The notes below the pieces were generated by a model, which worked only from the letters and a program-made list of their open reading frames with translations, made no database searches and was not told the DNA's origin. 64,000 bases of DNA, taken from Phaeosaccion multiseriatum. Taxonomy: Eukaryota; Protista; Ochrophyta, other classes. The translations under genes and the position numbers were made by a program. Within the stretch, counting starts at the first letter, position 1, and each line of letters opens with the position of its first letter. This document shows, piece by piece, positions 51,778 through 60,504 of this stretch. The DNA lies in assembly GCA_965112735.1 (NCBI GenBank), contig OZ218953.1, forward strand, positions 1,860,001-1,924,000. The letters run 5' to 3'.

Positions 51778-54700
51778 ATGGCCACGGCCTGTTCGAGTCG
51801 TTCCACCACCACTTCCTCTTGCATCAGTTCTCCTGCGCCACTCTCCTATCGTCCTCCTCTTCCCCCTCCCCCTCTTCCTCGTCCCCCTCCTCTCTCCACT
51901 CCTCCCCCCCCTCCCCCCTCTCCTTCTCCTCCTCCTCCTTCTACTTTCCCTCCTCCCCCTCCTCTCTCCACCCCTCCTCCGCTCATCAACTTGGAGATAA
52001 TAGCCGACCGCCCCGGGGTGGACGCTGCAGGGTGCAATGTTACAGCTCTCGCCACGGTCAGGGTTGCCCAGACTCACCAGAGCAACAGCGCGCGAACAGC
52101 ATCACCACCACCACCACCACTACTATCTCCACGAGAATCTGTATCCTCGGTGCCTTCGGTGCCTTCGGTGGGGCTATCACAGACTCTACAAGAACGAGTA
52201 CGGGAGGGGCAAGGCCGGGCGGCCTGTGACGTGGTGATATGCGTGGACACGAGCGAAAGAATGAGGACTCTACTCGGGTGAGTAAGGCTATGTCTTCTTG
52301 GCCAGGCTCACTTGGCTCGTACGATTTGAGCTCTTCGCCTCATTCATTGTGCCTTCATTCATTGTCATCTTTTCTGCTTCCTTTTCCCAGGGAGCTAACT
52401 GAGCTGATGGGAGGCCTTTTTGAGGAGCTGGATGAAAGTGAGTTAAGAAGCAGAAGCTCTGTCCTTTCACTATTCTGTTCTGTGTGAGAGGCACTCTTCT
52501 CTCTCTCCTCCGCCAATGTCCGGTGTCCTCTCTGTCTCACACCATTGCCATCACTTTGCCCTCTCTTCGTGTGCGGTACTTCCAGCTCACGGTTAGAACC
52601 CCTCCCTCCCCCTCTCTCGTTGGCTCCCTTTCCCTCTCCCTCTCCCTCTCCCTCTCCCTTTCCCTCCCTCTCTCCCTCTCTCCCTCTCTCCCTCCCTCTC
52701 CTCTCTCCCTCTCCCTCTCCCTCTCCCTCTCTCTCTCCCTCTCCCTCTCCCTCTCCCTCTCTCCCTCTCCCTCTCCCTCTCCCTCCCTCTCTCTCTCCCT
52801 CTCCCTCTCCCTCTCCCCCCCTCCCTCTCTCCCCCAATTCCACACCCCACAGGAGACACTGCAAGCCTCGTTGTCTTTAACGAGTGCGCAAGGCTGGCGG
52901 CTCCTGCCACTCCCCTTTCTGTAACCGGCCAGCGCGCCCTCCTCACTGCCCTCCAGACCACCTCTTTCGAAGGAGAGACAGACATCTGCGACGGCCTGCT
53001 TCGAGGCCTATACGCCTTGTCCACCCGCCCCCCTAGAGGCCACATTCAACTCCTGCTGCTGCTAAGCGACGGCTGCTCCACAGTGGGCCTCACGGACTCT
53101 CGCCTCATCGCTGGGGAGATGGAGCGGTGTCTCTTCAGTCTCGCACGGGACGCTCTGCCGCGCCGCTTTTGCTCCATCCATGCCTTCGGGGTTGGTCTTG
53201 GGGTTGGAGATGGGGTTAGTCGGGTTGGGATGGGGGGGACCCAACAACAGCAACAACAACAACAACAACAACAACAACAACAACAACAACAACAACAACA
53301 ACAACCCCAAGAAGTAGTGCTGGGGGGAAAAGCGGATCCGACCACCACCTTGGTGGCCCTGTGCAACGCGGGTGGGAAGGGAGGATCCTACACTAACGCC
53401 AGCCACTTCCTCGCCATGAGGAGAAGGGCAAAGGCAAGGGCAAAGGCAGAGGCAAAGCCTTGTTCAGCAAAGGAGGCAAGGTGCGGGGGGCAGGGCGGGG
53501 GTGAGGATGAGAGTGACAGGAGGCAGCAGCAAGACGACAATGGTGGAGTAGGAGCGGACGGAGGAGACACGAAGGAGGGCTTCTCCTCCCTTTCCCCCTC
53601 TTCCTCCTCCTCTTCCTTTCCCTTCTTCGCGACTCGCACCGGCCTCTACACCCTCTGTGCCCAGGACGTCAAGCTCCGTCTCGAGGCCGCCAATTGTGAA
53701 TTGAGCGAAGTGTTTGCGGAACACCAATTGCTGCTGGAGTGCCGCTGTGGCCGCTCCGATGGCGGCGAGAAGAGCGTCTCTGGCAGGGGCTCTCTCAAGC
53801 GGGACGGCAGCAGCAGCATTATCAGTGATAGTAGCAGCAGTAGAGGCAGCGGTAGTGCTGCTGCTGCTGCTGCTGCTGCTGCTGGTGGTGGTGGTGGTAG
53901 CAGATGTGGCTGTGCGGGGGTGGAGATTAGCGTGGATGACTTACATCTGGGCGAGGAGCGGAACATCCTCTTTGGACTGACGGTACCGCCGCATGTTGCG
54001 CCGTCGACGAAGGAGGAGCAGGAGGAGCAGGAGCAGGAGGAAGAAGAGGAAGACAAGGAGGAAAGGTGGAGGAGGAGAGCGAGTGGTAAAGACACAGAGA
54101 CAAGGGGAGAAGGCATGCTGCGGGAAGGTGACACGCAGGGTGCGGCATGGGCCGCTGCTGCTGCTGCTGCTGCTTCTGCGCGGACGGACGAAGGAGATGG
54201 AGCAGCACCAACGGCAGGAGTTGGTGATACAGCAGCAGCATCATCAGTCCCGGGCTTTACTAACGGTACGTAACTGCTTGTACGAGTGAGAATCGCGTCA
54301 CTTCTGTTATACGGAACGCCCATTCTTCTTCATTGTGACAGCGGATTGCGACGATATCCGCGGTTCTGATAGGCCCCTCCCTCCCTCCCTCCCTCCCTCC
54401 CTCCCTCCCTCCCTCCCTCCCTCCCTCCCTCCCTCCCTCCCCTTCTCCCTCCCTCTCCCCCCTTCTCCCTTTCCCTCTCTCCTTCTCTTGCTTACCTCTC
54501 TCTGAACCTACTCCGAAGAAGACCAGAGGAGGGGGAGGAAGAGAAGAAGGAGGAAGAGGAGCTGCGTGGCGCGATGCTCTGCGACTTTCTTCAACGTTGG
54601 TACAGGAAGGGAGGAGACAGCAGTGGCCACTCTCTGCCTGAAAGGAGGCAGCCTCAGAAGAGGCGACAACGACAACACACCGCTACCCACACCTACTGAG

Positions 54701-60504: not shown

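Follow-up and report, generated by a model that had tools for sequence, protein, structure and literature searches.

We analyzed a 64,000-nucleotide stretch of the Phaeosaccion multiseriatum genome (contig OZ218953.1, positions 1,860,001 to 1,924,000), hereafter the window, in whose numbering all positions below are given. On its forward strand, positions 51778-60504 read as a single gene of ten exons that would encode a von Willebrand factor A (vWA) adaptor module fused to a mitogen-activated protein kinase (MAPK), a reading that we give a probability of roughly two in three (0.68). The reading frame is open through the ten exons for a total coding length of ~1,510 codons, which corresponds to a protein of ~1,500 residues. 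The surrounding DNA has a GC content of 55-64%, many introns and abundant simple repeats. At present the locus is best described as a well-supported gene model from one genome, rather than as a demonstrated protein. The exons and the features within them are listed in Table 1.

Exons 1-4 share the coding sequence of the vWA module, whose last helix lies in the same stop-free exon (exon 4, the fusion exon) as the N-lobe of the kinase. The frame of this exon is free of stop codons from 54506 to 56092 and holds both the module helix and kinase subdomains I-II. As the two parts share one exon, the fusion is independent of the splice model. No in-frame stop occurs between the helix (55079-55225) and the Gly loop of the kinase (55976), and thus an upstream gene cannot terminate before the kinase. 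The original prediction for this locus, which was made from the letters and a list of their open reading frames (ORFs), had placed the helix and subdomains I-II in one ORF regardless of splicing. That much stands, but the ORF start that it gave, 54566, does not, as this GTG codon was a choice of the ORF rule. A start at the splice acceptor (54519) is more likely for the exon. All of the motifs that the prediction quoted were found at the locus, including DTSER, GETD, LLLSDG, the GEER stretch, the helix, IGQGAYGIV...VAVKR, TEY, and the ATG codons at 55679 and 55739. That the ORF is expressed in full, as a single transcript and a single protein, is our inference.

Introns 1-9 are all of the GT-AG type, and 8 of the 9 exon junctions are in phase when the locally best sites are used. 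Junctions 1/2, 2/3, and 3/4 each combine GT-AG borders with a pyrimidine tract upstream of the acceptor, and each keeps the phase. Exon 1 ends at a GG/GTGAGT donor in phase 2. The short exon 2 bridges the gap between columns 61 and 82 of the family profile described below, and the codon split between exons 2 and 3 restores the family consensus L...DR.SLV.YD. Exon 3 ends at a G/GTACGT donor in phase 1, and the TAA stop codon of the exon-3 ORF sits within this donor. The first AG downstream of the (CCCT)n tract in intron 3, which gives the exon start at 54519, matches the phase of the donor at 54266.

The predicted product of exons 1-4 is a genuine vWA module, in which a vWA domain is followed by a beta-sandwich and a WAV3_C-like helix. 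We used the vWA half of exon 3 (52849-53241) as the query of a HMMER search of 1.84 billion representative proteins (E-value threshold = 1e-3). The search matched 53 proteins with a best E-value of 1e-7 and identities of 28-40%. These relatives are mostly stand-alone proteins of 400-570 amino acids from bacteria and protists. When 25 of the 53 were scanned with Pfam, VWA was found in 24, Vwaint in four and RING in two.

From an alignment of 29 of the 53 relatives we built a family profile, a hidden Markov model of 443 columns. In a profile comparison by hhalign, whose column numbering differs slightly, exon 3 matched columns 85-195 with an E-value of 3.7e-19 and a probability of 99.2%, the piece with the GEER motif matched columns 261-290 (E = 2.6e-4), and the end of exon 1 matched columns 44-64. 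We also ran hmmsearch with the profile against 277 stop-free segments from both strands of 48000-62000, minus 54432-54473. The exon-3 ORF ranked first of the 277 (E = 5e-34) and the exon-4 ORF ranked second (E = 0.0029). Six matches, distributed over exons 1, 3 and 4, are strictly collinear with the profile (Table 1). For three weaker pieces, namely the end of exon 1, 53620-54100 (with the GEER motif) and 54521-55240 (the first 240 residues of exon 4), none of 2000 composition-preserving shuffles of each reached the real score. The best match of the exon-3 piece among solved structures is the vWA domain of ITIH4.

The locus retains eight of the nine family-invariant residues. The exception lies in the metal ion-dependent adhesion site (MIDAS), which reads DxSxR (D-T-S-E-R), with Arg in place of a second Ser that is invariant in the 29-member alignment. 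The first D, the S, the T (in GETD), and the D (in SDG) of the MIDAS are kept, so that the complete DxSxS...T...D pattern is absent. An N-terminal vWA fold with a degenerate MIDAS in which the later T and D survive is what the original prediction described, and the profile match agrees with it. Its expectation for Pfam, which was VWA plus Pkinase and possibly Vwaint, was borne out in part when the pieces were scanned separately. Pkinase was found, as detailed below. VWA_2 matched the exon-3 piece 52849-53250 below the threshold (E = 0.0018, 19.3 bits against a threshold of 27), the domain being split over three exons. Exon 1, exon 2, and the post-vWA pieces matched no Pfam family, and neither Vwaint (PF14624) nor WAV3_C matched the post-vWA pieces at E ≤ 10.

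The original prediction had also likened the region after the vWA domain to the C-terminal extension of WAV3/EDA40-type and vWA-Vwaint proteins. The profile matches support a predicted homology of this region with the C-terminal extension of stand-alone vWA proteins and of WAV3-type proteins. A link to the latter is given by P0013, an E3 ligase of the WAV3/EDA40 type with the order RING-vWA-WAV3_C-Vwaint. Residues 360-665 of P0013 align to profile columns 218-430 (E = 5e-16), and its Pfam WAV3_C domain occupies approximately columns 337-403, the region to which the helix of the window protein maps. The two proteins also have an LGD/GE.R strand motif in common. Vwaint begins at about profile column 383 in another protein, P0016, whereas the match of the window protein ends at column 383 and gives way to the poly-Ala/Gly linker. 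The WAV3-like part of the proposed extension is thus tentatively supported and the Vwaint part is not, because the helix maps onto the WAV3_C domain of P0013 and the linker starts at the position of Vwaint.

Exons 4-10 look to encode a complete ERK-type TEY MAP kinase, catalytically competent in appearance. Kinase class was assigned from exon-by-exon matches. Together, the exons span Pfam Pkinase positions 1-263, with matches at 1-38 (exon 4), 44-94 (exon 5), 96-152 (exon 6), 156-198 (exon 7), and 224-256 (exon 9), with E-values of 1e-3 for exon 4, 1e-27 for the exon-6 ORF piece, 1.5e-12 for exon 7, and 0.0085 for exon 9. Exon 8 alone, a piece of 42 amino acids, has no Pfam match; its sequence presumably corresponds to a MAPK/CMGC-type region, which it resembles. 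By reading, all of the catalytic motifs are present (VAVK, the alpha-C Glu, HRD, DFG, TEY, and SPE) and subdomain XI is readable. The TxY dual-phosphorylation motif takes the form TEY (57929-57937). Compared with solved structures, exon 6 matched MAPKs in 60 of 60 cases among the matches listed, including fungal Mps1, ERK5, Arabidopsis MPK4/6, and p38. For exon 7, Arabidopsis MPK6 and MPK4 were at the top, with CDK2 close behind. The assignment to the ERK-type TEY MAPKs follows from the Pkinase matches, the catalytic motifs and the solved-structure matches of exons 6 and 7. We considered and rejected a CDKL kinase, given the solved-structure matches and the KPSN, LGTP, and IGQGAYG loop motifs, which we take to be MAPK-like.

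Table 1. Exons and mapped features of the predicted vWA-MAPK gene (positions in the window)
Feature	Position	Strand	Description
Exon 1	51778-52277	+	Pro-rich low-complexity N-terminus, pre-vWA strand, first vWA strand with MIDAS DTSER; start codon at 51778 assumed
Profile columns 36-61	52192-52266	+	Exon 1, hmmsearch
DTSER motif	52246-52260	+	End of exon 1, from the translation
Exon 2	52391-52437	+	47 nt; vWA helix 1; acceptor after a pyrimidine tract; donor A/GTGAGT, phase 1
Profile columns 82-190	from 52852	+	Exon 3, hmmsearch
Exon 3	52853-54265	+	vWA core, poly-Gln insert, vWA end, start of beta-sandwich
vWA core	52853-53205	+	Exon 3; contains GETD and LLLSDG
Poly-Gln insert	53242-53305	+	Exon 3
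Profile columns 225-249	from 53641	+	Exon 3, hmmsearch
Profile columns 261-291	from 53917	+	Exon 3, hmmsearch
GEER-motif strand of beta-sandwich	53935-53979	+	Exon 3
Intron 3	54266-54518	+	253 nt; (CCCT)n pyrimidine tract
Exon 4 (fusion exon)	54519-56074	+	Rest of beta-sandwich, WAV3_C-like helix, linker, kinase N-lobe; donor AAG/GTGAGG, phase 0
Beta-sandwich remainder	54554-54649	+	Exon 4
Profile columns 289-320	from 54554	+	Exon 4, hmmsearch
WAV3_C-like helix	55079-55225	+	Exon 4
Profile columns 335-383	from 55079	+	Exon 4, hmmsearch
Poly-Ala/Gly/Gln linker	55211-55894	+	Exon 4; ~230 amino acids
Kinase N-lobe (subdomains I-II)	55976-56074	+	Exon 4; IGQGAYGIV, then VAVK
Exon 5	56522-56743	+	Kinase alpha-C helix through hinge, low-complexity insert; junctions phase 0; Pfam Pkinase 44-94
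Exon 6	57221-57433 or 57445	+	Start of activation loop included; 3′ end uncertain
Exon 7	57929-58061	+	TEY (57929-57937), subdomains VIII-IX; acceptor a clean pyrimidine tract + CAG
Exon 8	58287-58414	+	Junctions in phase
Exon 9	59878-60003	+	Kinase subdomain XI; Pfam Pkinase 224-256
Exon 10	60322-60504	+	Kinase C-terminus (ALTHGYL...) and stop codon

Three of the introns in the kinase half contain repeat arrays. In intron 4, an 11-bp tandem repeat (ATCCATTGGTC) occurs in 17 copies with 98% matches at 56304-56490. Intron 6 contains (CTGT)n and (TGTATGTA)n arrays at 57437-57772. Long spurious ORFs occur in the arrays of both introns because these repeats are open in several frames. Intron 8, which is 1.46 kb long and precedes exon 9, consists mostly of a GA-rich array of 1.2 kb (58417-59640) with higher-order periods of ~210 and 341 bp.

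The combination of a vWA module with a TEY MAP kinase was found nowhere else in the comparisons that we made, which agrees with the view of the original prediction that no counterpart is known. Kinase motifs occur in none of the 53 vWA relatives, and no Pkinase match was found among those scanned with Pfam. A scan of metagenomes with exon 7 recovered 80 MAPK/CDKL-like loci. No vWA module lies near the kinase in any of them, over 474 kb of sequence in total, but this negative carries little weight, given that the contigs are for the most part short and that the peptide patterns were biased towards CDKL-like kinases with TDY. With the vWA half as query, a metagenome scan gave no relative. The closest environmental relative of the kinase, L001 (171-1646 on contig Ga0073938_12136725), is 74% identical over exon 7. 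Its C-terminal tail is long and rich in Ser and Ala, a stop codon lies in frame ~17 codons 5′ of the Gly loop, and a vWA module is absent. Word-based protein searches found nothing with exon 3, where low-complexity words swamped the search, or with the kinase N-lobe, which shares too few words, and both results say little. Searching the ESM Atlas features with the fusion exon gave no usable match, Rfam has nothing in the window, and we found no paper on a vWA-MAPK fusion in the literature.

Several observations weigh against a single fused protein. The in-frame ATG codons at 55679, 55685, 55691, and 55739 lie 80-100 codons 5′ of the Gly loop, a normal length for the N-terminus of a MAPK, and a kinase-only product could start at 55679 or 55739. 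The openness of the linker is by itself weak evidence of coding, because triplet repeats, which make up most of it, stay open in several reading frames at once. A search of sequencing runs with words sampled from the stretch returned no RNA run from the organism; metatranscriptome runs contain 5-7% of the sampled words, shares that the GA-rich array of intron 8 probably explains. The exon-4 helix alone gave only a weak hhalign match (columns 338-381, E = 0.032). No orthologue of the vWA part was found in the protein library, including MMETSP and EukProt. As this library holds neither an orthologue nor the window's own protein, the lineage appears to be unsampled. Lastly, the strongest donor of exon 6, AG/GTGCGT at 57430, does not keep the phase when paired with the acceptor at 57929, which is the only credible one for exon 7.

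The ATG codons and the low-complexity repeat between module and kinase, whose openness is uninformative, would fit a locus with two expression units. An internal promoter and ATG (55679, 55739 or an upstream ATG of exon 4) would then give rise to most or all of the MAPK, the vWA part would be separate or barely expressed, and the fusion would be minor or absent. The nearest environmental kinase, L001, with its stop shortly before the Gly loop and no vWA module, also fits such an arrangement. However, a separate vWA mRNA would meet no in-frame stop before 56093, and the vWA-family profile carries on from exon 3 into exon 4 over an in-phase canonical intron. The composition of the linker also resembles that of an exon, and not that of an intron or of intergenic DNA. 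Besides poly-Ala, poly-Gly, and poly-Gln it contains three short unique stretches, which are G/A-rich with positive codon scores, whereas the introns of the gene are C/T-rich with negative scores. Furthermore, deviations from GGA in the Gly runs occur mostly at the third codon position. We consider the existence of two expression units unlikely.

The exon 6/7 junction bears on a second alternative, in which the gene is decaying, with the kinase broken at this junction and the MIDAS lost, or in which homopolymer or repeat-length errors of the assembly shaped the frames. Joining the donor at 57430 to the acceptor at 57929 leads to a frameshift and an early TAG. A run of seven G (57415-57421) lies just 5′ of this donor, and one extra G in the run would bring the donor into phase, so that a homopolymer error in the assembly is possible. 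The long poly-Gly, poly-Ala, and poly-Gln runs of exon 4 are likewise prone to length errors, and the replacement of the MIDAS Ser by Arg would fit decay. On the assembled sequence, one of three explanations must apply to exon 6: a weaker donor is used, the G run is mis-assembled, or the kinase is broken. Two weaker donors are in phase, GTTTGT (57434) and GTGTGT (57446), and GTGTGT also serves as the donor of intron 9. We rejected an alternative exon-7 acceptor at 57835, which would rescue the donor at 57430, as it lacks a pyrimidine tract and would make the tract coding. Decay or artefact is further opposed by the 8 of 9 junctions in phase, by the intact state of all catalytic kinase residues and of all but one of the invariant vWA residues, and by the ~1,510 codons that stay open over ten exons. 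In addition, four runs of one sample contain 87-88% of the sampled words of the stretch; these runs may be the assembly's own source. Decay or mis-assembly thus seems to us quite improbable.

A third explanation, chance similarity of a low-complexity N-terminus in a MAPK with a long disordered extension, could appeal to the sub-threshold VWA_2 score, the pieces without a Pfam match and the abundant low-complexity sequence of exons 1, 3, and 4, but is effectively refuted by the hhalign and hmmsearch scores, the 53 library matches, the conserved invariant residues, the six collinear matches over three in-phase introns and the shuffles.

The gene lies head-to-head with a large multi-exon RRP5-like gene on the reverse strand (40863-51609; S1_RRP5, OB_RRP5_4th, and HAT repeats). 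Only ~170-340 bp separate the 5′ ends of the two genes, and a bidirectional promoter region is therefore probably shared. Also on the reverse strand, at 33974-35074, is an exon of a poly(A)-binding protein (RRM + MLLE), whose best matches, in oomycetes and in one raphidophyte, one haptophyte, and one diatom, are only ~50% identical, which suggests a deep or unsampled stramenopile-like lineage. Elsewhere in the window we identified fragments of an ABC transporter ATPase (10096-11406, forward strand), a calcineurin-like metallophosphoesterase (16657-18327, forward), and a NudC-like protein (Nudc_N + CS; 30881-31738, forward), as well as an NPR3-like piece (62256-63176, reverse).

With few exceptions, MAP kinases stand alone as catalytic units, and they owe their specificity to docking motifs and separate scaffold proteins. 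If the fusion is real, the kinase would still need dual phosphorylation of TEY by a MAPK kinase (MAP2K), a dependence that would be retained because TEY is intact. The vWA module would act as a built-in protein-binding adaptor that tethers the kinase to a partner, complex, or site; alternatively, it could bring a regulator or substrate to the kinase. The long flexible linker would let module and kinase move independently. With the second MIDAS Ser changed to Arg, partner binding is probably altered or metal-independent. We infer the tethering role from the domain content. A built-in scaffold or sensor was also what the original prediction had in mind, with Ste5 as a parallel. In yeast, the vWA-like domain of Ste5 assists the phosphorylation of Fus3 by Ste7. 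The parallel is one of function only. Ste5 works in trans, as a protein separate from the kinase. By this analogy, the vWA module might bind the MAP2K of its own kinase or a specific upstream sensor, making a self-scaffolded MAPK that works like Ste5 but in cis. We hold this version to be very doubtful; if true, it would mean that a domain fusion has hard-wired one MAPK pathway branch in this lineage of algae. More generally, a MAPK that carries a vWA module would amount to a natural experiment in which fusion has hard-wired the specificity of a pathway.

Among known systems, the closest to the N-terminal part are stand-alone proteins of 400-570 amino acids in which a helical tail follows a vWA domain and a beta-sandwich, such as the MMETSP protein of Vexillifera abyssalis (P0008/P0060) and a VWA protein of Kofleriaceae (P0004 cluster). 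The module of the window protein is collinear with these over profile columns 36-383 of 443, at the 28-40% identity given above and with eight of the nine invariant residues kept, but it has large low-complexity inserts. The DxSxS MIDAS is intact in all members of the stand-alone family, in contrast to the DxSxR of the window protein. The stand-alone proteins end after the helical tail and have no kinase, whereas the window protein continues into the MAPK. Proteins of the WAV3/EDA40 type carry a RING domain, while exon 1 of the window gene has no Cys/His-rich RING pattern. The output domain is a ubiquitin ligase in the WAV3/EDA40 type and a MAP kinase in the window protein. The fusion would give the poorly understood stand-alone/WAV3-like vWA module a defined output partner, and with it possibly a clue to its binding target.

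Fusions of a vWA domain to an alpha-kinase, represented by the Dictyostelium VwkA type and the oomycete PITG_06533 group, have the vWA N-terminal to the kinase in one chain, as in the window protein (PMC3019232). Their kinase is an atypical alpha-kinase that is unrelated in sequence to the eukaryotic protein kinase/MAPK domain of the window. In the kinome of Phytophthora infestans, vWA occurs only on alpha-kinases, in line with what the original prediction had said of vWA-kinase fusions, and PAS is the only accessory domain of a MAPK (PMC3019232). The oomycete PAS-MAPK (PITG_01203 and orthologues; Judelson and Ah-Fong, 2010, PMC3019232) resembles the window protein in being a stramenopile MAPK with an N-terminal accessory domain. 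It differs in having PAS instead of vWA and TEH instead of TEY. It is also conserved across several oomycetes, in contrast to the window gene, for which we found no orthologue. The existence of the PAS-MAPK indicates that sensor or adaptor domains can be gained by MAPKs within this broad lineage, and the vWA-MAPK fusion would extend the short list of MAPKs with such accessory domains.

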